NCBI GenBank assembly: GCA_033442325.1 | Contig: JAWQFM010000018.1 | Location: forward strand, 698,617-762,616 | Source: Salpingoeca rosetta | Taxonomy: Eukaryota; Protista; Choanoflagellata | DNA: 64,000 nt | Direction of reading: 5' to 3' | Shown: positions 19,192 through 64,000 of the stretch, one piece after another | Position numbering within the stretch: position 1 is the stretch's first letter | How the letters are laid out: every line of letters starts with the position of its first letter | The notes under the pieces: model-generated | Told to the model about the DNA's origin: nothing | The model's input: the letters and a program-made list of their open reading frames with translations, nothing else | The model's database searches: none | Program-made: the position numbers and the translations under genes

Positions 19192-19746
19192 GTTGACAGT
19201 GTGGAGGAGGTGAGGCACGAGGAACGTGGCAGAGACAGGTGTGTGTGTGCACAGGGGCAGAGAGAGAGAGAGTGTGTGTGTGTGTGTGACAGAGAGTGAG
19301 TGTGTGTGTGAGAGTGAGAGACAGAGAGTGAGTGAGAGAGCGAGTGAGAGTGAGTGAGAGTGAGTGTGAGAGAGTGAAGGTGAGTGAGAGAGTGAGCGAG
19401 AGAGTGAGTGACACACACACACACACACACACGCACAGACACACACACTCACTCACACACCAACAGCACTGACCTGCTGGCTCAACTCAAAAGTGTGCAG
19501 TTTGATGATGTTCAAAGTGGGTGTGGGGGTCAAGGGGATGAGCTCGAATGTGAGTGCGTTTAGCCAAACGGTGGTGGGCGGGAACCTTTTTCAACTGGTC
19601 CACACAAAAACCATTTCATTGTTGACGAAAGCCAGAGGCGAAAGAAGTGTTTCCGTTTTGTGGGTGTGTTTTTTTTTTTTGGGTGTTTGTGGGTTTATTG
19701 GGGAAAACTCGCTGAAATCTTACACTGCTCCCAGCGCTCAAAGATG

Positions 19747-19776
19747 CTGGGGGGCGACACTGACCCGCGAATTTTT
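19747..19776 (+). repeat. Left terminal inverted repeat (30 bp)
   Basis: Exact reverse complement of 29937-29966. Confidence 0.95.
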
Positions 19777-20002
19777 CAAATGACCCGACCGCGGGCCCTC
19801 AAATTGGTCGCGGTCACAGATCGTTCATAAAAGTCTGCATTCACCTTGTGCTGTCGGTAGCTTCGTCGGCTCTTGCGTGCACGACAACAACCGCAACCAC
19901 TTTCGACCACACACACGAGCACGAACCCAAACCAACAAGCGCGTCGTTTGGTGACGAACCAGCACTTTGACCCGTAACACCACAGCAACTTGACACGACA
20001 AC

Positions 20003-20806
20003 ATGGACCCTGTGATGCTTCGCAGCCGTAGTGCCGGACACAGTGCGCAGCAGTTGCTACCATTGTGCGACCAATTCGACGAGTTCATGACTCACGTCCA
20101 CCGCACACTCGGTGGTGCGTGTTCCAATATGACATTCACATTCTATGGACAGGCAACCAAGCTCGACCGATACTCATACGCATACCTGAAGCGGGTTCGT
20201 GCAGAAGCCCGTGTCGTCGAGTACGACGCACGACCTGACATCGTCATGACAGCAATTTCTCAGACCACGCCTGCAACAGCACCAGCCACCCTTCAGATTG
20301 ACCTGTCCGATGACGAAGACGAGTCCCACGAAGGCGAAGCGGCAAGCACAGACAGCACCTGTGCAGCACAGCCGATCTCGCGCTTGGATCAGCAACAGCC
20401 ATCAATCACCCAGTCGGAGTTGTTGTCGTCATTGGCGCCGTTTGTTCTCAAACGCGTTCGCTATGCGACAACTCTGCACGCGCCCAGACAGTCGACACCT
20501 CTTACAATCATGTCCCTCACCTCCAATCGGCTTCCCTCCGTGTGTCGGCTTGTGTTGTGCCAGCTACCATTGACTCGCACTTTGCAGCGCATTCAAACAG
20601 ACGTGAGGGCTGTTTTCATGGAAGACAGCGAGGTCCCTGCTGTAGCTGCCATGCCACTCAGGTATTTTGTTGTGAGTTGGAGGGTGGGACAGTCGATTGA
20701 TATTCTTTCGTGCGTGAGGGGACGCTGCGCCGTATGCGAGCTCGAGGGTGAGGTTCGGCTTCCCTATCATTGTGCGTGTTGCAAATCGAAGTTTGCTCAT
20801 TCTTAA
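20003..20806 (+). CDS. Transposon ORF1: 267-aa accessory protein with C-terminal Cys/His cluster
   Basis: Intronless ORF inside the TIRs ending CAVC..YHCACCKSKF. The stop lies 18 bp before the transposase ATG. Confidence 0.65.
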   Translation: MDPVMLRSRSAGHSAQQLLPLCDQFDEFMTHVHRTLGGACSNMTFTFYGQATKLDRYSYAYLKRVRAEARVVEYDARPDIVMTAISQTTPATAPATLQIDLSDDEDESHEGEAASTDSTCAAQPISRLDQQQPSITQSELLSSLAPFVLKRVRYATTLHAPRQSTPLTIMSLTSNRLPSVCRLVLCQLPLTRTLQRIQTDVRAVFMEDSEVPAVAAMPLRYFVVSWRVGQSIDILSCVRGRCAVCELEGEVRLPYHCACCKSKFAHS

Positions 20807-20824
20807 GCACTCACATCGTGAACA

Positions 20825-23235
20825 ATGTCGCTTGATATGGTTAGGTACTCCAGGAATCAGATTGATTGGCAGACAACCTTACAGCACCAACCGGCACAGG
20901 AAGACTTCCCCATGGACAGCGTCCGTATATCCATGGCTATGCGGGCATCCTTGGCGGCCGCTCTCGGTGCATGTGGTACAATTTTTTTCACGATGGCCGG
21001 ACCAGACACGGATGCGAACGTGGTTTCATTGGCTACCCTCGATACCGCAAGGGTGCGCGTGCACGATTCATTGCACCAGCATGCCATCTTTGTGTCGCAT
21101 GAGTCGTTTTTGGGCTTGTTTCGGCTTGCTCAGAAAGATCGCTACATGACATGCAAGGTGACCGTGTCAGACCAGCTTGTGCAGGGAGAGGGCTTTGGCC
21201 AGAGCCTGAGTGACGATGGTCGCATGGACTGTGATGACGACGATGATGCTGGATGCGACAGCGATGAAGACAGCACGGCACACATCGGTGCCATCTCTGC
21301 TGCCACCACGACGCCATCAACAACGACAACACCACCCGTGTGCCAGGACGCACCCGCCACCGCTGCCACCACTGCTGTCACCACGACGCCATCAATAACG
21401 ACAACACCACCCGTGTGCCAGGTCGCACCCGCCACTGCTGCCACCACTGCTGTCACCACGACGCCATCAATAACGACAACACCACCCGTGTGCCAGGTCG
21501 CACCCGCCACTGCTGCCACCACTGCTGTCACCACGACGCCATCAACAACGACAACATCATCACCAGCGCAGTCGGGCAGACGACTAACCGAGGCAGAGAT
21601 ACGTCACCGTCTCAACATTCACGGGCTGATCCTCAAGCGCACACGGTTGCACAAAGGCTACCCAGTCTACACGTGTGTTTGCAAAAAGTGCGGCGAGCTG
21701 CAGCAGCTCCATTCTGTTGCCCCGACAAAGCTTGGGCGGCATAGATCTCGTTGTCACAAGCGGACTGGAGGAATGCGGCAGCTAAACATATTCCAAGTGG
21801 CAAGGGCTGCAGAGACAGCTGTTCGCACCAAGCGCATCGCCCCGTCCCTGCATGTGCTGCGTCGATTTCTGCATGCTGAACTTGATTGTCTGCAAGTGAT
21901 CAACGAAGTAAACGAAGACAGCTCGTATATGCCAAGTCACCTTGCCATCCTGTATTCTACAATGGAAGATGGGATGCCCTCGGTTATGAGAGAATGGTTG
22001 TCTCTGGCTCTACATCGACATTTCGGGGCAACTCTGCCAACAGCCAGGGTTCCGCAAACGCCCGCACTGAACATGCTAGCAGCAAGTGTGTATGCAGGGA
22101 TCAAGCCTTACACAGCAATGCGCAATGCAGGCATTCCGCTGCCGTCCGAGCGAACGATGCAGAGGAATGCGCCCCTGCCTCGGTTTCAATCGGCCGTCGA
22201 TGATGAAGCTATTGCTAACGCATTGAGACTCCTCAGTATGGACGGCGCCACTGCGATTGACGGGTGCCTTTCGGTTGACGGCATGGCGTTGAGTTCTTGC
22301 GTGGAGTTTGTTCCCAGTTATGGCCAAGTCACTGGACTGTCCGACACGACCTCGGCAGAAGAGCTACGTGCGGCTGTGGAAGGCCAAAGCCTTGTGCAGT
22401 GGGTGCGCAGCGCGAAGCTCATACAGACAGCACACATTGCAGTCGTGACCACCCTCGACAGCACATTCTGTCTTCCAGTTGCCATCACGTACTCTCACCA
22501 GATGTCGGCGTGGGGTGACTTTCACCGCATGATAAGCTCGTTCTTGGACGGCATACATCGCTGCCTTCGGTGCATCGACGCCAAGTTGGAATGCAAGCTT
22601 GATCCAGTGTCTGCCACTTGCACTGCATGTGACACAGCAGGAACCCGTTGCATTTTCTTCAACATCGTGGCAATCTCCACTGATTCAGAAGCAGGGCAGC
22701 GCCGAGCCCTTCAAGAGGGCTTTCCGGGCATCACAAGCCTACTCGACGTTGGCCATGCCATCAAGTGTCTCCGGAATGCACTCGTCAACGCCTTCATCCG
22801 CCTCAGAGGGTTTCCAGTGAGCACTCGTATGCTAATCGGGCTGCTTCCACTTTCGACAGTGGTTCCCGCAGACAGAATGGCACACCTGCATGTGCGGCGC
22901 TTGCTTGATGCTGCCGAAGACCTGCCCTCAGGAAGCACCGTCGTCACACTGCACCCTGATCCGTTGTTAAACCAGAGCTGGTCATGCGGCATCATTGTGG
23001 CTCTGTGCTCGTGGGTGGATGCAGACTTCTTTGTTGATGACAATGGCCAGTTCTTTCGTGCACGGCGCATCTCGCGGCAGCCAGAACTCCTCTTCAAGTT
23101 TCAGCCTGGCCAGACCACCATCTCCAGAGCTGCTACTTATATATTTGTCATCGTTGATGGGCGAATCCATACTTTCGATGCCCGCTCTTCACGCTTCGTG
23201 CAAGTACACCTACATGCAGAAGAGGCCGGAGTTGT
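20825..23235 (+). CDS. P-element-like DDE transposase, 5' part (interrupted by LTR)
   Basis: Motifs LPSERTMQR, GCLSVDGM (first D), VAISTDSE (second D) and LLDVGHAIKCLRN (DxxHxxKxxRN). BED-like CVCKKC..LGRHRSRC upstream. Confidence 0.85.
21306..21557 (+). repeat. 75-bp coding tandem repeat (~3.3 copies) in the transposase N-terminal linker
   Basis: Unit starts at 21306, 21381, 21456 and 21531 and encodes TTTPSITTTPPVCQVAPATAATTAV. Confidence 0.9.
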
Positions 23236-23692
23236 TGTTGCAAGTTCATGGTGGTGGTGCTGTTGTTGGAGACTTGTGTGTGTGTGTGTGTGTGTGTGCT
23301 GTGTGTGCTGTGTGTGCAGAGTGTGCTGTGTGTTGTGTGGGAGATTGTCTTGGCAAGAGAGAGTTGTGTGTGTTTACTTGAGTTGTGAAGCAAACAAGGA
23401 TGTAGGATGAATGAACACTCCAACAGAAAGAAACAGAGCAGAAGACAAGAATTGTCGACAACGCAAAGTGGTGACGTGGCAGTGTTTGTTGAGAGTTGTG
23501 TGGTTATGTGGTGTGTTATGCAAGAGCATGCAACATCGAGCAACCACAGCACAAGCTAAACACTGCACGTGCAACAGGTTGGAGGGAAATCACGTGAACA
23601 TTCCAGAACACAAGAGAGGTGAGTGCAAATTTGTGGTGTCGTGAAGAAGGGAGGTCAATGATGACTCAGCAGACAGGACTTGCCTGTCAACA
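23236..23692 (-). repeat. 3' LTR (457 bp)
   Basis: TG..CA ends. Preceded on the minus strand by PPT AATGCGGGGGAG (23693-23704). Near-identical to 27517-27973. Confidence 0.93.
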
Positions 23693-23914
23693 CTCCCCCG
23701 CATTGACCTACCTCTCTGCTGCGTTGATGTTCTGAAACGTGATGAGCATGTGGATGATGTCATGCATGTAGGAATGGCATGGGCAGATGTAGGTGAGATG
23801 TGAGTAAGGACGTGTGTTGTGGAACACGTTTAAGAAAATGGTTGGTGCCTGTGGTGCGCAGCCTGTTGTGGAAGGCTGGCCCGAGTGAAGGCGTGTCCTG
23901 TGGTGCGCGGCCGC

Positions 23915-26705
23915 TCAGAGGTCCTGACGCGGAGTCGAAGGACGTGGCGACCGGCCCGAATGAGGACGGGCCCGTGGCTGGTAGCCTGGCAGAGGACGCT
24001 GGTCGAACAGCATCGTGCAGAACTGAGCCGTCTTGGGCCGAGGGAGGATCTTCGTGAGGAGATCTGCGATCATGTGCTCCGTGGCGAGGTAGCTCAGCAC
24101 AATCCTCTTGGTGTCGACGCACTCGCGGATGTAGTGGTACTTGACGAGGATGTGCCGCATGCGCGAGGCGGCGTGTTCGGCAACGCGCTGCGCCGGCTGG
24201 TTGTCCGTGTGGATGAGCGTGGGCTCGCACAGGACAGCGCCGGTGAGCTCCTCCTGGAGTTGGCGAAGGAACATGAGTTCCTGTGCGGTGGCTGCGAGAG
24301 CCATGTACTCCGCGTCGGCGGAGGCTGTGGCCACGGTGGCCTGCAGCTTGGAGTTCCAGGACACGGGGCCCGTGGAACAGAAGACGACGAAGCCCGTGCG
24401 GGAACGTCGCGTGTCAACGTCGGAGGCGAACGACGCATCCGAGTACGCTGAGAGCACGCCGTCGGCAGTGCTGCCGTTGCTGGTGTCGCCAGTGGCGGCG
24501 TACTTGATGGTGTAGGACAAGGTGCCCTTGATGTAGCGAAGAAGGTGCTTGGCAGCCTTCCAATGGTCCATGCCGAAGTGCTGCATACGGCGAGATAGGA
24601 TGGAGACAGCCGCCGAGATGTCTGGGCGCGTCATCGTCGCAGCATAGAGGAGGGAGCCAAGCAGCTCGCGGAACGGCACGTCCGGGAGTGGCTCCTCCTT
24701 GTCGGCTGGCTTGTCGACGTAGCCAGTGCAGAGCGGCGTGCCGACCGGCTTGCAGTCAGCCATGCCGAAGGTCTCCAGCACGCTGCGCAGGTAGTGCTCC
24801 TGGCTCATGGTGACGGTCCTGGCCTTGCGGTCGTGCTGCACCTTGATGCCGAGACATATGTCTGGGCTGCCCAGGTCCTTCATCTTGAAGCGCTTGGAGA
24901 TGGCCTTCTTGAACGCGGCCATGTCGCTGTCGCTGTCGGCGAAGATGAGCAGGTCGTCCACGTAGACGGCAACCCACATCACTTTGCCACCATTGCAGGT
25001 GCGGCGGTAGATGCAGGCGTCCGTGGCTGTAGCGACGAAGTCCTGCTCGCGCATCCAGGCGTCCAGCGTGTGGTTCCACAGGCGCGGGCTCTGCTTCAGC
25101 CCATACAGCCCGCGCTTGAGGCGCAGGACTGTACTCGGGGAGAAGATCCCGTCGACGGCCGGTGGCTGGACGTAGATCTCGTGATCCACGGGCGCGTTGA
25201 GGAACGCCGTGTTGACGTCCATCTGCTGGATGTCCATGCCACGCGCGACGGCCATGGCGAGCATGGTGCGGATGGCTGCGATGGTAGCCGTCGGGGCAAA
25301 GGTGTCTGTGTAGTTGACACCGTGGACCTGGGAGTAGCCCTTGGCAACCCAGCGCGCCTTGTACTTGATCACCTTGCCCTGGTCATCGCGCTTCCTCCGA
25401 AAGATGACCATGCTGCGGAGAAGCTTGTGGCCCTTGGGAAGGTCAGCGCGAGGCACGACGTCGTAGACGTCATTGGCCTGCATTGCCGCAAACTCGTCCA
25501 GGATGGCTTGGCGCCACTCCTCAGAGTCTGGCGAGGCAAGCGCCTCCTTGACGGTGCCTGGCTCAGCTGACGTGGCAAAACTGCCAGCAGCGATGTCTGG
25601 TAGATGACCACCCACTGCTGATGTCTTCTCCCCCGTACCAGCAGCGCTGGTGGCAACGTGACACGTGGTGGTTGAGCCACCAGAGGTGTCGTTGTCGCTG
25701 AGGGTCTCAGACACCAGCAGCTGGTCCCAGACGGAGCCGCCAAGGGCGCGTGGCTGGAGCTGCAGCTCCCCCGCACGTGGTGCAGTGGGAGCGCCGGTGG
25801 CACTGTCCTCGGTCGAACGCTGAGCGGTATTGTTGGCATGCGAAGCAGAGGCACCGCTGTTCTGCTCTTGCTGCTGCTGAGAGGAGGCGGCGTGCTTGTT
25901 CTTGATGGCGCCGAAGCGAGCGTGGATGGTGTGGACAACGCGTCGCGTGTCCGGCATCCAGACGACGTGGGCCTGGTCCTCCTCGGCGAAGCCGACGTAG
26001 ACGCCAACGCGTGAGCGTGGGTCAAGCTTGTGCCGCGTGCTGCTCTTCTCCACATGCACGTAGGCCGGCGAGCCGAAGACGCGCAACAGGCTGACGTCGA
26101 AGGCGTGCCCAGTCAGGGCCTCGAACGGTGACTTGTCCTTGAGGCTCCTGCGCGGCGCGATGTTGTGCAGCAGCGTGGCGTGCTGCACGGCGAAGCCCCA
26201 GAACGGCTTGTCCAGGTCCGCAGCAAACAGCATCGTACGCGCCGTCTCAAAGAGGGTGCGGAAAGTGCGCTCTGCGGATCCGTTCTTGGCCTGCGAGTGC
26301 GGTGGCGAGAAGCGCTGCTTGATGTCGAAGGCCAGGCACAGGTCGGTGAAGTCCTGGCTCTTGAAGACGGCGTCGCTGTCCGTCTGTAGCGTGGCGCCTC
26401 GGAGCGCGTTGACGACGTGGCGGTCCTTGCGCAGTTGCTCCAGGGCCGCACCGACGTCGTTCTTGTGCCGGATGAGGAACGTCCAGGCGAAGCGCGTGCA
26501 GTCGTCGATGAAGGTCAGCGCGTAGCGTGCACCTCGCAGCGACGTCTCCTCCAGCGGACCGGCGATGTCGGCGTAGAGCAGCTGGCATGGCCCAGCGCTG
26601 CGTGGAGCAGACTGCTTCGGGATGGAGGCGCGCGTGCTCTTGCCAAGCGCACATGGCCCACACGTGACGATTTGCTTGGAAGAGGCCTGGGCGATCTGCT
26701 GCCGG
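23915..26705 (-). CDS. Copia pol: integrase - reverse transcriptase - RNase H, 5'-truncated
   Basis: IN: CGPC, YADIAGP, TFIDDCTRF, LQTDSD, NGSAER, KLDPRS. RT: KARWVAKGYSQ, QMDVNTAFLN, LYGLKQSPRLW, YVDDLLI. RNase H: YSDASFA, AEYMA, TDNQPA, ADLLTK. Confidence 0.95.
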
Positions 26706-27973
26706 AGACAGCACACATTGCAGTCGTGACCACCCTCGACAGCACATTCTGTCTTCCAGTTGCCATCACGTACTCTCACCAGATGTCGGCGTGGGGTGAC
26801 TTTCACCGCATGATAAGCTCGTTCTTGGACGGCATACATCGCTGCCTTCGGTGCATCGACGCCAAGTTGGAATGCAAGCTTGATCCAGTGTCTGCCACTT
26901 GCACTGCATGTGACACAGCAGGAACCCGTTGCATTTTCTTCAACATCGTGGCAATCTCCACTGATTCAGAAGCAGGGCAGCGCCGAGCCCTTCAAGAGGG
27001 CTTTCCGGGCATCGCAAGCCTACTCGACGTTGGCCATGCCATCAAGTGTCTCCGGAATGCACTCGTCAACGCCTTCATCCGCCTCAGAGGGTTTCCAGTG
27101 AGCACTCGTATGCTAATCGGGCTGCTTCCACTTTCGACAGTGGTTCCCGCAGACAGAATGGCACACCTGCATGTGCGGCGCTTGCTTGATGCTGCCGAAG
27201 ACCTGCCCTCAGGAAGCACCGTCGTCACACTGCACCCTGATCCGTTGTTAAACCAGAGCTGGTCATGCGGCATCATTGTGGCTCTGTGCTCGTGGGTGGA
27301 TGCAGACTTCTTTGTTGATGACAATGGCCAGTTCTTTCGTGCACGGCGCATCTCGCGGCAGCCAGAACTCCTCTTCAAGTTTCAGCCTGGCCAGACCACC
27401 ATCTCCAGAGCTGCTACTTATATATTTGTCATCGTTGATGGGCGAATCCATACTTTCGATGCCCGCTCTTCACGCTTCGTGCAAGTACACCTACATGCAG
27501 AAGAGGCCGGAGTTGTTGTTGCAAGTTCATGGTGGTGGTGCTGTTGTTGGAGACTTGTGTGTGTGTGTGTGTGTGTGTGCTGTGTGTGCTGTGTGTGCAG
27601 AGTGTGCTGTGTGTTGTGTGGGAGATTGTCTTGGCAAGAGAGAGTTGTGTGTGTTTACTTGAGTTGTGAAGCAAACAAGGATGTAGGATGAATGAACACT
27701 CCAACAGAAAGAAACAGAGCAGAAGACAAGAATTGTCGACAACGCAAAGTGGTGACGTGGCAGTGTTTGTTGAGAGTTGTGTGGTTATGTGGAGTGTTAT
27801 GCAAGAGCATGCAACATCGAGCAACCACAGCACAAGCTAAACACTGCACGTGCAACAGGTTGGAGGGAAATCACGTGAACATTCCAGAACACAAGAGAGG
27901 TGAGTGCAAATTTGTGGTGTCGTGAAGAAGGGAGATCAATGATGACTCAGCAGACAGGACTTGCCTGTCAACA
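26706..27973 (+). repeat. 1268-bp direct duplication of 22425-23692 (811 bp of transposase plus LTR)
   Basis: Constant offset of 4281 bp. Only three differences seen: 22733A/27014G, 23512T/27793A, 23654G/27935A. Confidence 0.93.
27517..27973 (-). repeat. Second LTR (457 bp), flanked by GTTGT on both sides like a solo LTR
   Basis: GTTGT at 27512-27516 and 27974-27978. No TGG-type PBS next to it. Confidence 0.92.
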
Positions 27974-27976
27974 GTT

Positions 27977-29644
27977 GTGCCCCATCGACTGGTGTTTTCA
28001 TCCGCAGATTTCCACGACTGCTGTCTTGTGTCACGATGTGGCGCTATACTGACGGGGTCATTCAAACCAGACAAGCGACAGCTCATGTTCAGAGCAAAGA
28101 TGAGGCTCGAGGGCATTGGCACGTGTCACGATGCTGCGATCATTGGTGGGCAACAGGTGGTGGCTGCCACTGCAACTGGCGTCTTCAAGTGCAATGGTAA
28201 CAATGCTCCAGTTGCTGTCAAAGGGCTGTCCGGAATCAAAGTACTTCGCGTTGTGACCAATGAGGCGGGACGGTTGGCGATCTGCACTGCGCGGCTCGTC
28301 CTGCTTGAGGACACAAGTGATGGCCATTCAATTTGGCAACCACAGGACCTTGAGACGGAGGACCATGTGACGGACATGGCCGCTGACGGCAATGCACTCA
28401 TATTTTCTCATGGTCGCAGGGTGTCGTTGGTCACACGTTTCGATCCCTTGAAGGAATACCTGGTGAAGATTCGCCGCGTGTTCGATGCCGGAGGCTATGG
28501 TGGCTACGTTGGTGATCTAGCTGATTTTCGAACCGCTTCCATGGAATTGAAGAGCTATCTCAATGAGATGCGACAGCAGCAAGTCAATGCCATTAGCTTC
28601 CTGCCCCCAGGGTCTCTCCACGGCCCGCAAGGATGCATTAGCGCAACGACCCTAAAAACAATTGCTATATTGTGCACCGGATTAGATCAATTGCATGACC
28701 GCGGCATCACCAGCACGGCACGTGCCCTTCAAGAGGATCCGTGTGAGAGTTTCTTCTCTCTGCTGGTATCCGGCACAACGACAGCACCCACACACAAGGA
28801 GCTTGCCTTCAGGTTCCCCGTTGTTGTCAAGAACGCACTCGTGCGAGCAGCACAAGGGTCTCCAGTGTTTGATTTTGACAAGACTCGGACAGAGAGATCC
28901 TACAGTGGCCTGGAGTTTGTTGGACGTGCCCAGCCAACCTTCAGGCCATTGTTTCAAACGCGGCACAATCGAGATCGTACCCATGTGGATGATTGCGATG
29001 ACCTGCGACAATTCATGTCATCGTTTCTCGCCAACCTGAGCTGTCGACGGTCATCGCGCGTGAGGGCAACTGGCAAAGCACTTCTTGGGCAGAAGCCGCG
29101 CATCGCGTTCCTGACACTGCGCCAAGATGAGCTGCCATCAGACCGACCACTTCAGCCGACGTGCAAGCGACCGAAGACGGGCAGTAAAGGACACACACAA
29201 AGGGTCGCTTCCATCACGTTCCCCAAAAACGCCTTTGTGGGTGTCCTCCGGCAAGCGTCGACTCAAGGAGGTGCACAAGAGCTGTGGATTGCGAAGATGG
29301 TAGAAGACGTGTACGGCGAGCCGAAGGATTGTGCAATTCAGTGGCTAGAACAGAGCAACGAGAAGAATGGTACACATACGCTGCAGAAGGAAGTGGTGCG
29401 ATGCCCTTTCGGCTCATGCATCGCAGACATCTCGCGATTCGTCGACGTCAAGCGACACGGGGTGATTAACATCGACGACACTGTTTATGCTGTGCTGAAG
29501 GAGGAAGTTGGGCAGTTGGAGCAAGAACGCGACAACGACAAGCTTGCCCGTGCCAGAGATGGTGACGACGACGATGACAATCCCTATGCAAAACCTTACT
29601 CAACAGGATCAGAGGAACGGCGTCGACGACATCGACGACGGTAA
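27977..29644 (+). CDS. P-element-like transposase, 3' part
   Basis: Joins in frame to the 5' part (..HAEEAGV|VPHRLVF..) when 23236-27978 is removed. Contains LQEDPCESFFSLL, resembling P-transposase xQDxLExFF (catalytic E). Confidence 0.85.
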   Translation: MPHRLVFSSADFHDCCLVSRCGAILTGSFKPDKRQLMFRAKMRLEGIGTCHDAAIIGGQQVVAATATGVFKCNGNNAPVAVKGLSGIKVLRVVTNEAGRLAICTARLVLLEDTSDGHSIWQPQDLETEDHVTDMAADGNALIFSHGRRVSLVTRFDPLKEYLVKIRRVFDAGGYGGYVGDLADFRTASMELKSYLNEMRQQQVNAISFLPPGSLHGPQGCISATTLKTIAILCTGLDQLHDRGITSTARALQEDPCESFFSLLVSGTTTAPTHKELAFRFPVVVKNALVRAAQGSPVFDFDKTRTERSYSGLEFVGRAQPTFRPLFQTRHNRDRTHVDDCDDLRQFMSSFLANLSCRRSSRVRATGKALLGQKPRIAFLTLRQDELPSDRPLQPTCKRPKTGSKGHTQRVASITFPKNAFVGVLRQASTQGGAQELWIAKMVEDVYGEPKDCAIQWLEQSNEKNGTHTLQKEVVRCPFGSCIADISRFVDVKRHGVINIDDTVYAVLKEEVGQLEQERDNDKLARARDGDDDDDNPYAKPYSTGSEERRRRHRRR

Positions 29645-29936
29645 CTTCATTCAAGCAAGGTATGGATTGTACTCTAGTACTCTGTTTAGTTAAGTGGTTA
29701 GTCGGTTCTTTCAATTCTGTGCTGAGTTGTAGCTGTTGGGCGAACGCATTCGTTGTTCTGCTACATGTGACTTGAGGACTTGGACTGGTTCTCTTCTGAG
29801 CGCGTGTTGGGACGTCTGTATTACACGGTGGAGTTACCGAAACCAAGGGAAACGACGCAAAGCACATCACAAACGCCAGCTCGCGGGCCCAGATGACCCG
29901 ACCCGCGAGGCCAAAATTGGTCATGGTCAAGGTGGA

Positions 29937-29966
29937 AAAAATTCGCGGGTCAGTGTCGCCCCCCAG
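29937..29966 (-). repeat. Right terminal inverted repeat (30 bp)
   Basis: AAAAATTCGCGGGTCAGTGTCGCCCCCCAG followed by TSD AAGATG. Confidence 0.95.
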
Positions 29967-30433
29967 AAGATGGGGTAGGCAATTGCAGCAAACAAAGTTT
30001 TTTTTTTGTGTTAGATGCTTATTTGGACGTGTGGGTGTGGCACTTTGTGGGCGACTTTCCAGTTGTGGCAACTGACACCCACGCCCCCGCAACTCACTCA
30101 GTAACTTAGCACTCACATCAACAGACCAACACACGCAAAGCACGACACACACACACACACACACACACTCACTTGTTCATTTTCCCATCGACGCGACAGG
30201 AGCTCAACAGAAGGAGAAGAGGGAGAAGGAGAAGAGGGAGGAGTAGGAGGTGCTTGTGTGCTTGTTGTCACAGGATCTCTCTCCTTCTCAAACTCACACT
30301 CAACTGTCCCCCCACCCCCTTGTCTTGGTCCCTTTCTCTCTTTTCTCTTGCAGGTCCAGCGATCATTCCTCCTTACATGTGCTCTAGTGCTCTTGTTTAC
30401 TGAGTTTCTAGTGTTTACTTGTCTGCTCTCTCT

Positions 30434-59281: not shown

Positions 59282-60594
59282 GTGGTGGTGGTGTGTGTCG
59301 ACGTCGTCGTCGTCGTTGTTGTCGTCGATGTTGTTGTTGAAGTCGTGGCGGTAGCAGCACGATTGATGCCTGTATCTCTGCACACGTCTGCAGGTCCCAT
59401 TTGGGGTTGTCCACAACGCCTCCATCATGAACGCGATTGGCTGCTGTGGTCTCCAGCTCTACAACTTTGGAAAGACGGTGCGTATTGTGGTGTGTGTGTA
59501 TGTGTGTATGTGTGTATGTGTGTGGAGTGTGTGTGTGTATGTGTGTATGTGTGTGAGTGTGTGTATGTGTGAGTGAGTGAGAGATTGTGTGAAGAGTCTT
59601 GTGCTTGAGCACCTCCGCTGCTCACATGCAATCACGCTGCCACGCGTGGTGCAGGTGAGCATTGTGTTCTTCACGGAGAACTGGCGGCCGGATTCCTTCT
59701 ACGACAAGATCAAGGCCAACAAGGACCTCGGCATGCACACCCTCTGCCTCCTCGGTGCGTTGTGCGTGGAAGCTGGTGTTGGTGTTGTGGCTGTTGTTGG
59801 TGATGTTGATGGCTGCTGCTGCGGCGGTGGTGGTGTTGGTGTTGTGGGCGTTTGCAGTCGACGTGCTGGTAGTCGTTGTAGTTGTCGTGTGTGTGTGTAT
59901 TGTACACGATGAAGGAGAGCCTGTTGCTTCCATGTGGTCACGCGACCAACCGCCGGCACACGCGTGCCATCACGCCCTCAGACATCAAGGTGAAGGAGCA
60001 GAGCATTGAGAACTTGATGAAGGGGCGCAAGGTGTATGAGCCTCCTCGCTACATGTCCGTCAACCAGGTGCGCACGGATATGCTCGCATGTATGTGTGTG
60101 TCTGTGTGTGTGTCTGTGTTTCTGCGTGCTGCTGTGTGTGTCTGTGTTTCTGCGTGCTGCTGTGTGTGTGTGTGTGTGTTTCTGTGTGTTTCTGCGTGCT
60201 GCTGTGTGTGTGTATGTGTGCGTGTGTTTTGTGTGTGTTTTGTGTGTGTATCTCTGTGTGCATATATTTGTTTGTGTTCATGTGCTTCTGTCGTTGTGTT
60301 TTCCTTGTTTTCGCTCCCTGTCTCTGTTTGCGTGAGTAGCTGCGCGCGCGCGTGCGCGCGCGTGTGTGTGTGTGCGTGACATGCACAGCGGCGAGAATGG
60401 CGTTGTCGAACGCCGGCAGCTGCCGCACAGTTGTCATCAAAGATACTGTTCGGCAACCCCTCACGTGTCTTTCTTCCACCAATGTGTACCCTGTGCAGTG
60501 CGCAGAGCAGCTGATGGAGGTCGAGGAGAAGCGCCAGCTCGGTGGGTAATGTAACTCGACACACACAACATGTTGTGCCACTCCCCCCCCCCAT

Positions 60595-60632
<38 letters not shown>

Positions 60633-60826
60633 TGCCATCTGACACAATATCATGTCACATGTGTGTGTGTGTGTGTGTGTGTGGTCTTGCACCCATGCTT
60701 TCGAACCACCCCTTGCTCACTTCCTTCCTTGCACCTGCAGGCGTGTGCGGGCCAGATGCGCTTGCTGTTGGCGTGGCGCGTGTTGGATGCGAGGACCAGG
60801 TCGTTGTCTGCGGCACTCTCGTGGAG
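58178..60826 (+). CDS. DPH5: Diphthine methyl ester synthase; 3' end lost in N gap (60841-61463)
   Basis: [89 protein letters not shown]. Confidence 0.95.
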
Positions 60827-61472
60827 GTGCGCGGGCGAGANNNNNNNNNNNNNNNNNNNNNNNNNNNNNNNNNNNNNNNNNNNNNNNNNNNNNNNNNNNN
60901 NNNNNNNNNNNNNNNNNNNNNNNNNNNNNNNNNNNNNNNNNNNNNNNNNNNNNNNNNNNNNNNNNNNNNNNNNNNNNNNNNNNNNNNNNNNNNNNNNNNN
61001 NNNNNNNNNNNNNNNNNNNNNNNNNNNNNNNNNNNNNNNNNNNNNNNNNNNNNNNNNNNNNNNNNNNNNNNNNNNNNNNNNNNNNNNNNNNNNNNNNNNN
61101 NNNNNNNNNNNNNNNNNNNNNNNNNNNNNNNNNNNNNNNNNNNNNNNNNNNNNNNNNNNNNNNNNNNNNNNNNNNNNNNNNNNNNNNNNNNNNNNNNNNN
61201 NNNNNNNNNNNNNNNNNNNNNNNNNNNNNNNNNNNNNNNNNNNNNNNNNNNNNNNNNNNNNNNNNNNNNNNNNNNNNNNNNNNNNNNNNNNNNNNNNNNN
61301 NNNNNNNNNNNNNNNNNNNNNNNNNNNNNNNNNNNNNNNNNNNNNNNNNNNNNNNNNNNNNNNNNNNNNNNNNNNNNNNNNNNNNNNNNNNNNNNNNNNN
61401 NNNNNNNNNNNNNNNNNNNNNNNNNNNNNNNNNNNNNNNNNNNNNNNNNNNNNNNNNNNNNNNGACGACGAC

Positions 61473-61558
<86 letters not shown>

Positions 61559-64000
61559 TCCGGACCTGCTCGTCAACCGTTCACAACATCACAAAACATA
61601 GCCACACAAAGTCATGTTGAGCGCGTTTGGTCGGTGCCAGCGGTTGCTTTGTGTGAAGTTTTACACAAATATTCCGTTTGCCCCATGCATGTCTAATTCG
61701 GTGCATCGTTTGGGTTCATTGTTGTTCGTTTTTCGTTCGTTTTTCGTTCGTTTTTCGTTCGTGTTTGCGTTCAGGGGTTGCCCCGTTGACCCCTTCGACG
61801 TAGTTGGACACCAGCCAGCCAGCCTACCGCGGTTTGACGTACCAAACCTTCGGATTGCTTCTGCTTGTCGTTCTGCTTTCCTTTGTTGCTTGCGCACAAC
61901 CATAATTTTCTCCCTTTGTTTTTTCTTGCTTGCGTTGCACTTCACCTGTCATTCGCCACCGGGTACGGTTGTTTTGTGCCCCGGTTTGTGACCACATGCG
62001 CGTGCATACGGTCCATGTTCAAAGCACCTTCGCCACCGCCGAAGGCACAACAGGGTCGAATGCTTGCGTGTACGTCGGTGGTAATTTCTCATGCGATCAG
62101 CCACCCCACAACTTCAAGCGTCAGTCACGCCGCAAGCAAGCAAGCAAGCAAAAGCAAGTTGTGTGATTTGAGAAAAGCAACACTTTGTTGTTGTGAGACC
62201 CAACCTCATACACACACATGCATGTGAGCTTTCATTTTTCTTGCTGATGCATTTATCTCATCCACCCATCCACACCACACAGGTGGGTCAGGGTTTGGGT
62301 GCTGTTTTGTTGCTCTCCTTTTCCTTTCCTTTCTGTTCTGCTCTTTCTTGCTTGCTTTCTTGCCGATGCTTGCTTGCTTGCTTGCTGATGGTGGGTTTTG
62401 TTGTGTGCCTGTCCTTCAGGTTTGTGTGTCACACACATCATCGCATGTCACAACAAGCCAATACAATAGCCAAGCCATCGTTCCAGCGGTGCGTTTTGTC
62501 GCACAAACACCTGCTCGCACCACTGCCCGCACCACTTGGTGAAAGCCAAACGAGTTCCATTTCACGCTTGCCAAGTCATGGTGCCGTTTTGTTTTCTGGT
62601 TTCTTTTGCCTCTTGACCCAAGCTCCTCTTGCTCACATCACCCCCATCATCCATCCCAGCGTCCATCCTCACACCCGATCCATTTCGTTTTCTTGATCCA
62701 GCCGATCCAGCTCCAAAACAGCAACCCAAGGACACCCGCCCATCCCCGACAGATCGCAGACACGCATACGTCGTTTCTTTCCCACCCACAACACGCAGGT
62801 GAGCGAGCCTTTGTTGGCTGTTTTCGTTTGTTAACGTTCGCTGTTTGTTTGTTTACCCCCCTTGTTCCTTCCCCCGTGCGTGCGTGCGTGCGTGCGTGCG
62901 TGTGCGTGCGTGCGTGCGTGTGTGCGTGTTTCGATACGTGGCGCGCATCGTGCATTGCTCCCGACCCAAGTGGCATCGGGGTCGCTCGCAATACCCTCCC
63001 CACTCTTCCTCTGTGTGTTTGTGTGCCTCCCCACCTTTCTCTCTCGCTCTCCCACACACACACACACAACCAAGACCACACCAGCACTTGCTTCTGCTGT
63101 TCTGTGCTTTTTCTGTGCTTCGGTACGTCCCTTGGTTGTGTGCTGTTGTGTGCTGTGGTGGGCATTGCTTCTGTCCACCTCTTCAGCACGATCCCTGCAC
63201 ACACACGTTCCTTTCTTGCTGTGACGCGGTTCCCACACGAGCACACCACAACCAACCGCCAGCCAGCATGTGTGTGTGTGTGTGTGCTTCACTTTCTGCG
63301 ACCCCTGATTCCAACCTCCCTTCCCAACCAGCCAACCAATCAACCCACTTCTGCTCTGCGCACTCCTTGCTGAGTTGCCGTGCAATCGGTTGTGCACTCC
63401 TCCTCCCATCCCAACCCACCCACCACCGCTTCCTTTCTTTGTCTTCTTCCTTCGCATGCACTTCTGTTTCGTGTGGTGAGAGTTTGCTTGGTGTGTGGCC
63501 TGTCCTGGCCTTGTGACTTGCGTTGGTCGCGCGCATTGGTTGCGGCCGCCCCTGTGCATGGCCTGCATGGCACACGCGCTTTTCATGTGACACACGCGCT
63601 TTTCATGTGACACACGCGCACGCACACACGCACAACTAGTTGTTGTTGTTGCACGCCACGCTTCTTGCCGCCACACACCACTTGTTTGTGTTGCTCGTGC
63701 CACACGTATCATCGGGCTGCATTCTGTTTTGTTCCCTTGTTTTCAAAACCATCGCATCCACGACGCAATTCGCTCTCACCACACCCATCCCGAGCAATCA
63801 TCTGCGCACCAACTCACCGACCCCCCCCCCTCCTCTCTCTCTCAAATACTCCTTTCCTCTCTCTCCTTTTCTCCCCGTGTCATCTTGGCTCATGCATGCA
63901 TGACGTTCGGCCGTCGTGTGTCACCGTTGCATTTTTTTCCCTTTTCGCCCTCCATCCAACCCCTCATCTGCAAGATAACTTGGCAGGCATCTGGCGACCC

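Follow-up and report, generated by a model that had tools for sequence, protein, structure and literature searches.

An interrupted cut-and-paste transposon of Salpingoeca rosetta and its probable distant kinship with the P element and THAP9 transposases

Boundaries and gene structure of the element

The window analyzed here is a stretch of 64,000 nt (C18:698617-762616) of the 55.4-Mb Salpingoeca rosetta assembly, and coordinates refer to it unless another contig is named. From position 19747 to 29966 it carries a DNA transposon that has terminal inverted repeats (TIRs) and is flanked on both sides by a target-site duplication (TSD). The element is now 10,220 bp long because a Ty1/copia retrotransposon is nested within it; without this insert it measures 5477 bp. 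We consider it likely that it is a cut-and-paste transposon with a single gene, encoding a 1571-aa DDE transposase distantly related to those of the P element and THAP9, that it makes a 6-bp TSD, and that it was disrupted by the copia insertion. Its ends, its coding parts (formerly split into open reading frames, ORFs) and two motif blocks shared with a miniature inverted-repeat transposable element (MITE) are located as follows.

19741-19746, no strand: left TSD copy, AAGATG; single copy in the empty-site paralogues
19747-19776, plus strand: left 30-bp TIR, CTGGGGGGCGACACTGACCCGCGAATTTTT; from inverted-repeat comparison and genome search
19777-19816, plus strand: left subterminal motif block (TGACCCGACCGCGGG ... 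AAATTGGTCGCGGTCA); found again at 29890-29929 and, conserved, in the MITE
20003-20661, plus strand: exon 1 (the earlier "ORF1"; 219 codons plus 2 nt); covered by a transcript contig from 19868 and by the alignment of a homologous ORF
20662-20844, plus strand: 183-nt GT..AG intron with two in-frame stops inside; joint seen in run X17 only
20845-23235, plus strand: exon 2 before the copia element, with Thr/Pro-rich repeats, a CCHH-type finger, LPSERT, both Asp, the Zn2Cys6-like cluster, DVGHAIKCLRN and the start of the beta-rich insertion
27979-29644, plus strand: exon 2 after the copia element, with the rest of the beta-rich insertion, the helical QEDPCESFF region, a small beta-barrel, a basic tail and the stop
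29890-29929, plus strand: right subterminal motif block; repeat of the left block
29937-29966, minus strand: right 30-bp TIR; from inverted-repeat comparison and genome search
29967-29972, no strand: right TSD copy, AAGATG; single copy in the empty-site paralogues

The two TIRs form a perfect 30-bp inverted repeat that starts CTGGGGGG, and the termini of the element read 5'-CTGG...CCAG-3'. A search of the 55-Mb genome with the 30-bp TIR, allowing up to three mismatches, returned both ends of the element and one MITE, and nothing else. When the left flank, a single AAGATG and the right flank are joined, the result aligns without gaps to at least seven paralogous copies of the target repeat, and each of these empty sites has one (A/G)AGATG. 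In four sequencing runs, loose contig ends at 19746 continue into the same empty-site sequence. Together with the AAGATG that flanks the element, the empty-site paralogues and the loose ends demonstrate the boundaries and the 6-bp TSD, which thus go beyond inference; a first-pass annotation of the window had reported the perfect TIRs and the AAGATG duplication, and both stand. Three independent insertions have a 6-bp TSD each, namely AAGATG in the window, AAAATT at the MITE and AATGAC at a second family on contig C15. The target itself (19640-19746 plus 29973-30000) is a short dispersed repeat with at least 40 genomic copies. An Rfam search gave no RNA gene at or around the insertion site. Scans for bacterial promoters and terminators found nothing and are irrelevant to eukaryotic DNA. 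The two subterminal motif blocks are presumed, as a prediction from sequence, to be binding sites of the transposase.

The coding region begins with ORF1 (20003-20806), and ORF2 (ATG at 20825) follows in the same frame. Two stops, TAA at 20804 and TGA at 20819, part ORF1 from the ORF2 ATG, and the first-pass annotation had read the region as two tandem intronless ORFs, the first of them an accessory gene. On such a two-gene reading, ORF1 would specify an accessory protein in its own right, and the transposase would come from ORF2 plus ORF3; metagenomic relatives, too, have an upstream ORF closely ahead of the large ORF. However, a 1309-nt contig of run X17 joins 19868-20659 to 20843-21358 and skips 183 nt with GT..AG ends. 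The intron (CAG/GTATTT ... GGTTAG/GT) takes both in-frame stops with it, and the frame is kept. Residues 214-269 of the spliced 1571-aa protein, which lie across the splice junction, align to the contiguous upstream ORF of a metagenomic relative (E ~0.01), and ORF1 by itself gave no match, in Pfam or otherwise. Since the intron is spliced in the X17 contig, transcription and splicing both occur at this locus, and exon 1 is what had been called the "accessory gene". ORF1 and ORF2 are one two-exon transposase gene. The two-gene reading is already contradicted, and we assign it next to no probability. Unspliced sequence at 20662-20844 occurs in three other runs, X3 and X5 (typed as DNA) and X7 (guessed to be RNA). 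After splicing and removal of the copia element, the coding sequence comprises 4716 nt.

The ORF at 20825-23410 is 100% identical to the NCBI hypothetical protein PTSG_06860 of S. rosetta. This gene model (881 aa; 20003-23473) is a transposon fragment whose 3' end lies within a long terminal repeat (LTR) of the copia element, and it can be corrected as such. Its predicted ORF1-ORF2 splice leads to another frame and conflicts with the 183-nt intron of the transcript contig.

The nested copia retrotransposon

The retrotransposon and its duplications consist of the following parts (RT, reverse transcriptase).

23231-23235, no strand: left copia TSD, GTTGT
23236-23692, minus strand: copia LTR of 457 bp, the 3' LTR in its own orientation
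23693-26705, minus strand: copia internal region (integrase, RT, RNase H; no gag/protease end); Pfam
26706-27516, plus strand: 811-bp duplicate of the host exon 22425-23235; 1 difference in 811
27517-27973, minus strand: second copia LTR; 2 differences from the first
27974-27978, no strand: right copia TSD, GTTGT

On the minus strand, the stretch 23236-27973 forms a Ty1/copia element with Pfam matches to rve, SH3_retrovirus and RVT_2, which gives the order integrase, RT, RNase H. Its two 457-bp LTRs (TG..CA) differ at 2 of 457 positions, and the TSD of 5 bp is GTTGT. At least 58 pieces of this copia family are present in the genome, mostly 96-99% identical. By comparison with the S. rosetta transposable element (TE) survey (Southworth et al. 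2019, PMC6875170, in the part compared), the nested copia is a member of a high-copy pseudovirus family; Srospv3 (445-bp LTR, 121 copies) would fit, as an unconfirmed candidate for its identity. Excision of 23236-27978, which is the copia element plus one copy of GTTGT, yields the 5477-bp element and an open ORF2 frame of 4077 nt (1358 aa), with D485, D620, D641-H644 and E1060 (ORF2 numbering) within the expected motifs, exactly as the first-pass annotation had described. P0002 and other homologues are collinear and continuous across the insertion site.

The gag/protease end of the copia element is missing, and in its place lies an 811-bp copy of the host exon (26706-27516 corresponds to 22425-23235). 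The LTR and the host piece together form a 1268-bp direct repeat, 22425-23692 and 26706-27973. The depth of the DNA runs is 1.3-1.55x over the contig with the duplicated part, which fits a real duplication, and transcript contigs carry the variant of the second duplicate, a G at the position equivalent to 22733. The layout would be explained by a tandem duplication followed by LTR-LTR recombination. Gap-repair filler with a captured copia fragment was considered as the source of the 1268-bp duplication and rejected, as other copia copies identify 23236-23692 and 27517-27973 as LTRs with a 5-bp TSD.

With the copia element in place, the product stops at residue 1074 of the spliced protein, ahead of the catalytic Glu. 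The frame that the first-pass annotation called intact is thus open once the copia element is removed in silico, but interrupted as it stands. It appears that the current copy cannot move itself. An alternative is that the copy still functions because the nested copia is spliced out as a long intron. An in-frame removal between GT (23244) and AG (27974) is possible and would add only 4 residues, in the poorly conserved beta-rich insertion, and the locus is transcribed. However, this joint occurs in no read or contig, within a stretch examined that ended at 25500 and with contigs that break at the LTR. Correct splicing would also face competition from the LTR signals and the duplicated exon piece inside, and an intron of 4.7 kb is long for S. 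rosetta. Neither a second autonomous copy nor a recent insertion of the family was found in the genome. We regard this alternative as very unlikely, and take the copy to be disabled.

A complete transposase would be expected to bind the TIRs and subterminal motifs, to excise the element, and to join its 3' ends, at a spacing of 6 bp, to the target DNA. The first-pass annotation also suggested that the element was recently active. Signs of youth do exist, as 4716 nt are open and the TIRs are identical. Nonetheless the claim holds only in part and was overstated: the element is older than the copia insertion, in which 2 of the 457 LTR positions already differ, and the family in this genome comprises one coding copy, broken by copia, and one MITE. 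The family is nearly extinct in the S. rosetta genome.

The transposase, its relatives and its kinship with P

The motifs and domains of the transposase lie at the following positions.

21289-21559, plus strand: 75-bp tandem repeats, in frame, about 3.6 copies, encoding Thr/Pro-rich repeats
21674-21757, plus strand: putative zinc finger CVCKKC-x16-H-x4-H(C); from the pattern only; not THAP
22277-22279, plus strand: first catalytic Asp; motif SVDGM, family alignment
22562-22651, plus strand: Zn2Cys6-like cluster; family alignment
22682-22684, plus strand: second catalytic Asp; motif TDSEAG
22745-22777, plus strand: DVGHAIKCLRN, the D(2)H motif; 21 aa past the second Asp
28745-28747, plus strand: catalytic Glu in QEDPCESFF; family alignment
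About 29204-29476, plus strand: C-terminal small beta-barrel; predicted fold

An exhaustive HMMER search of 1.84 billion representatives identified ten homologous proteins, all from metagenome or run assemblies, and, apart from one cluster with an NHL repeat, no Pfam family exceeds its cut-off in any of the ten. P0002 (970 aa, 33% identity, E 1e-53) is the closest of them; word-indexed homologue searches returned the window protein itself or P0002 only. The motifs SVDGM, TDSEAG and QEDPCESFF are conserved across the family. Other conserved features are LP(S)xRT, a first Asp in a hydrophobic strand, the second Asp (DSEA), QEDxxE(S)xFS, and, at the C-terminus, a domain that shows a WFAK...WLE pattern and then a basic tail. 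All six full-length members checked retain D..H..K..R[N/V], and D..H..K..RN lies 21-25 residues after the second Asp. Between the two catalytic Asp lies a cysteine cluster, CX2CX6CX8CX2CX6C, which is strict in four of these six members and replaced by longer cysteine-rich versions in the other two. The spacing of the cluster is Zn2Cys6-like; matches to Zn2Cys6 proteins are far from significant (PUT3, E 8; Pfam Zn_clus, E 0.37).

The structural tests were made on an AlphaFold2 model of P0002, built from a 23-sequence alignment. Foldseek placed the Drosophila P transposase first, with E-values of 4.6e-6 (probability 1.0) and 8.1e-6, followed by ISCth4 (2.5e-3) and Hermes (3.6e-2). In VIA-align, the model matched the Drosophila P transposase (DmTNP) with Z 19.9 (6p5a_A, 378 residues aligned) and Z 19.6 (6pe2_A, 336 aligned, rmsd 4.2 Å). 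The runners-up were Transib (Z 9.5), Hermes (8.4), integrases (about 8), ISCth4 (7.8) and RAG1 (7.2), so that Transib, hAT, IS256, RAG1 and all other transposases stay at 9.5 or below. From the count of aligned residues it follows that the alignment takes in part of the DmTNP insertion domain (339-528); PF21788, as noted below, gave no match. The neighbours in an ESM Atlas shape search were THAP9/P clusters (TM by target 0.47-0.64), and those found with language-model (ESM) features were mostly PF21787 clusters (cosine 0.77-0.86). In the published P signature, the first D is in beta-1, the second D after beta-4, [C/D](2)H right after beta-5, and E in alpha-4 (PMC8230255). The catalytic residues of the P0002 model occupy these positions: SVDGM is on strand E107-120, TDSEAG just past E241-251, D(2)H after E270-273, and QEDPCESFF on helix H678-687. 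The model has a pLDDT of about 72-91 in the RNase H region (residues 70-340) and about 63-92 in most of the helical part (570-720).

Several points weigh against this interpretation. The structural match comes from P0002 and not from the window protein, and the model has a mean pLDDT of 57.8 that falls below 50 in the beta-rich insertion. None of the 23 members has a Pfam P/THAP9 model (PF21787, PF21788, PF21789, PF12017) at the cut-off. Profile and single-sequence (phmmer) searches of the PDB sequences gave no transposase. Dada, Kolobok and KDZ have no solved structures, and the fold search is therefore unable to rank them against P. Flanks differ between contigs of the same metagenomic element (chimeric assemblies), so TSDs cannot be read there. 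Run X17, on which the intron is based, is classed as RNA by the tool's guess and by the splice itself. At the level of sequence, PF21787 matches weakly in 5 of 23 members (best E 0.02), and the window protein reaches E 0.074 and 13.8 bits, where the cut-off is 24.6; PF21788, PF21789 and PF12017 match in none of the 23, and a genome-wide Pfam HMM search with PF21787 and PF21789 found nothing. Kinship with P is thus clear by predicted structure and suggestive by sequence. The first-pass annotation called the element P-related, and this holds by fold but not by any curated Pfam family. The modelled structure shows the catalytic RNase H domain as a very distant relative of those of the P element and THAP9 transposases.

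Outside this domain, the parts of the protein are less familiar. Near the N-terminus, the 75-bp repeats are 93-95% identical and encode a Thr/Pro-rich 25-aa repeat. One relative has an unrelated Ser/Pro/Thr-rich repeat at a similar position. Pfam gave no THAP domain in exon 1 or at the ORF2 N-terminus, even at E 10, and no match to the putative zinc finger at 21674-21757. This CX2C-x16-H-x4-H finger would be the sole candidate for a DNA-binding motif. The insertion between D(2)H and E may be propeller-like in its beta-rich part, as suggested by NHL matches in 4 of 23 family members, all of one subfamily or cluster, and by weak ESM Atlas neighbours. The C-terminal domain of the window's own protein, folded alone, gives a small beta-barrel with a pLDDT of 66. 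Its best matches (PWWP, BAH, chromo-barrel, Tudor, DIM2, ZMET2, MazF) reach Z 5.5 at most, which is within the noise range of the tool, and Foldseek gave no match to the domain alone at E 0.001. In the whole-protein model, which is that of P0002, matches to BAH reached Z 6-6.7.

Relatives were found in the same genome and in metagenomes. The 289-bp MITE (C25:200493-200781, minus strand) has the subterminal motifs and, with 2 and 4 mismatches, the TIRs in common with the window's element, and its TSD is AAAATT. Judging from these shared ends, it is derived from that element. The second family has a single copy (C15:2865-8414) of 5550 bp with 19-bp TIRs and the TSD AATGAC. Its TIR begins CTGGCCTCGG, with the 19-bp form CTGGCCTCGGACATCC(T/G)CT, and it has subterminal palindromes, TGTCCGCT(C/G)(G/C)AGCGGACA. 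The identity of its protein with the window protein is 24-31% by tblastn and 28-35% by genome search. The C15 coding region shifts frame between about 5833 and 5964, where there is probably an intron. The C15 element may be intact, and may be the only intact member in the genome. The 5552-bp element of one metagenomic relative has 19-bp TIRs with a G-run at their start, and in it an upstream ORF precedes the large ORF. The contigs of P0003 and P0004 yielded no TIRs. The lineage has homologues in marine and other metagenomes, plus the second family in the S. rosetta genome.

In a distant relative, contig Ga0335398_10012341 (L029 5848-5853), a 296-aa upstream ORF with a zinc-finger-like motif and a 1083-aa transposase ORF share one frame, with one TGA between them; this layout may reflect a small intron or read-through. 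Elsewhere in the window, an AT-rich island at 60001-62000 has a GC content of 0.36, against about 0.55 in the rest.

Significance and comparison with known systems

Most known P/THAP9 transposases come from animals, and a THAP domain, a GTP-binding insertion domain and TSDs of 7-8 bp define the group. The lineage described here, in the closest unicellular relatives of animals, would keep the P-type catalytic scaffold, with a changed target stagger, DNA-binding domain and insertion domain. It thereby widens the known structural range of the superfamily and offers a natural comparison for what sets TSD length and for the role of the insertion domain. The practical impact is modest, as the family is nearly extinct here and its only coding copy in the genome is broken. 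Somewhat short of an even chance, in our view, is the wider proposal that these elements form an undescribed, deep-branching clade allied to P/THAP9, of a rank between subfamily and superfamily, in choanoflagellates and uncultured, mostly marine eukaryotes. Such a clade would be marked by a 6-bp TSD, CTGG or G-run termini, a Zn2Cys6-type motif in the RNase H domain, a propeller-like insertion module, and possibly a chromatin-reader-like C-terminal barrel. If this is true, the clade could bear on the origin of animal P/THAP9 genes, since the host belongs to a sister group of animals, and also on the diversification of DDE transposases in their insertion domains.

The S. rosetta TE survey lists seven DNA families (SrosH, SrosHar, SrosM, SrosS, SrosTig1/2 and SrosTm), which are of the types Helitron, Harbinger, MULE, Sola1, two Tigger and one Tc1/mariner (Southworth et al. 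2019, PMC6875170, in the part compared). No P-like family is among these seven, and the rows of the survey table compared hold no combination of a 30-bp inverted repeat and a 6-bp TSD (PMC6875170). In the same part of the survey, the S. rosetta DNA transposons resemble the window's element in host, low copy number and the presence of one transposase gene, which often contains introns. The TE annotation of this survey was taken up again in a later chromatin study. No family matching the element was found in the part of the survey compared or in the published descriptions of Dada, Kolobok and KDZ. Two families are thus added to a catalogue that, as far as compared, has none of this kind. The element is apparently undescribed, as judged from this literature, with Repbase and Dfam outside the comparison. 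The first-pass annotation had set it apart by non-CA termini, a 6-bp TSD and the lack of a THAP domain, and in this respect it was borne out.

A rival assignment would be to a different C/DxxH superfamily (Dada, Kolobok, KDZ, hAT or MuDR), and the element's likeness to P would then reflect only the shared RNase H fold and an insertion domain. The sequence similarity to P, which stays under every curated threshold, leaves room for this. Dada has 6-7 bp TSDs, a D..D..DxxH..E catalytic core and transposases of more than 1000 aa with zinc-binding motifs, and is present in protists (Kojima and Jurka 2013, PMC3706591). However, Dada has no TIRs, targets snRNA or tRNA genes and has a D2-to-E distance of about 176 aa (PMC3706591), whereas the window's element has 30-bp TIRs and lies in an ordinary dispersed repeat in which Rfam finds no RNA gene. 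Kolobok and KDZ share C/DxxH-type DDE cores and additional cysteine clusters, and extra zinc clusters are typical of both (PMC9587614). Kolobok, however, has TTAA TSDs and RR..YY termini (PMC9587614), in contrast to AAGATG, AAAATT and AATGAC and to CT..AG here. The TSDs of KDZ measure 7-8 bp, with 8 bp in Zisupton/Dileera and 7 bp in Kyakuja, which has CA..TG termini and no TIRs (PMC12730594). hAT differs by an 8-bp TSD and by a C-terminal dimerization domain that Pfam does not match in the lineage. Among the 23 members, KDZ, hAT and MULE Pfam families gave no match at E <=1, and PF21787 alone recurs. In the structural comparison on the model, Hermes and ISCth4 rank far behind P, with the Z scores given above. 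Membership in another superfamily is thus improbable, and a distant relationship to P/THAP9 is preferred.

Compared with P and THAP9 themselves, the lineage agrees in a predicted RNase H-fold DDE core with D in beta-1, D after beta-4, D(2)H..K..RN after beta-5, and E in alpha-4 past a large insertion. The window's element also agrees in TIRs of about 30 bp, a cut-and-paste layout and one transposase gene. The TSD is 6 bp in the lineage versus 7-8 bp in P, for which 7 bp is the lower end of the range, and the termini are CTGG..CCAG versus CA..TG in P. TSDs of about 8 bp have been described for P (PMC3706591). The first-pass annotation had spoken of different end chemistry; what has been shown is the different target stagger of 6 bp. 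P/THAP9 proteins have an N-terminal THAP domain, and the lineage has none. The spacings D1-D2, D2-D(2)H and D(2)H-E are 135, 21 and 419 aa in the window protein, 73, 36 and 192 in DmTNP, and 70, 40 and 199 in THAP9. Across the lineage, D1-D2 measures 135-177 aa versus about 70 in P, and it is longer because the Zn2Cys6-like cysteine cluster lies between the two residues. The D(2)H-E insertion spans 407-523 aa and is partly beta-rich, versus about 190-200 aa (192-199) in P/THAP9. Relative to P, the lineage also has an extra C-terminal domain, predicted to fold as a beta-barrel.

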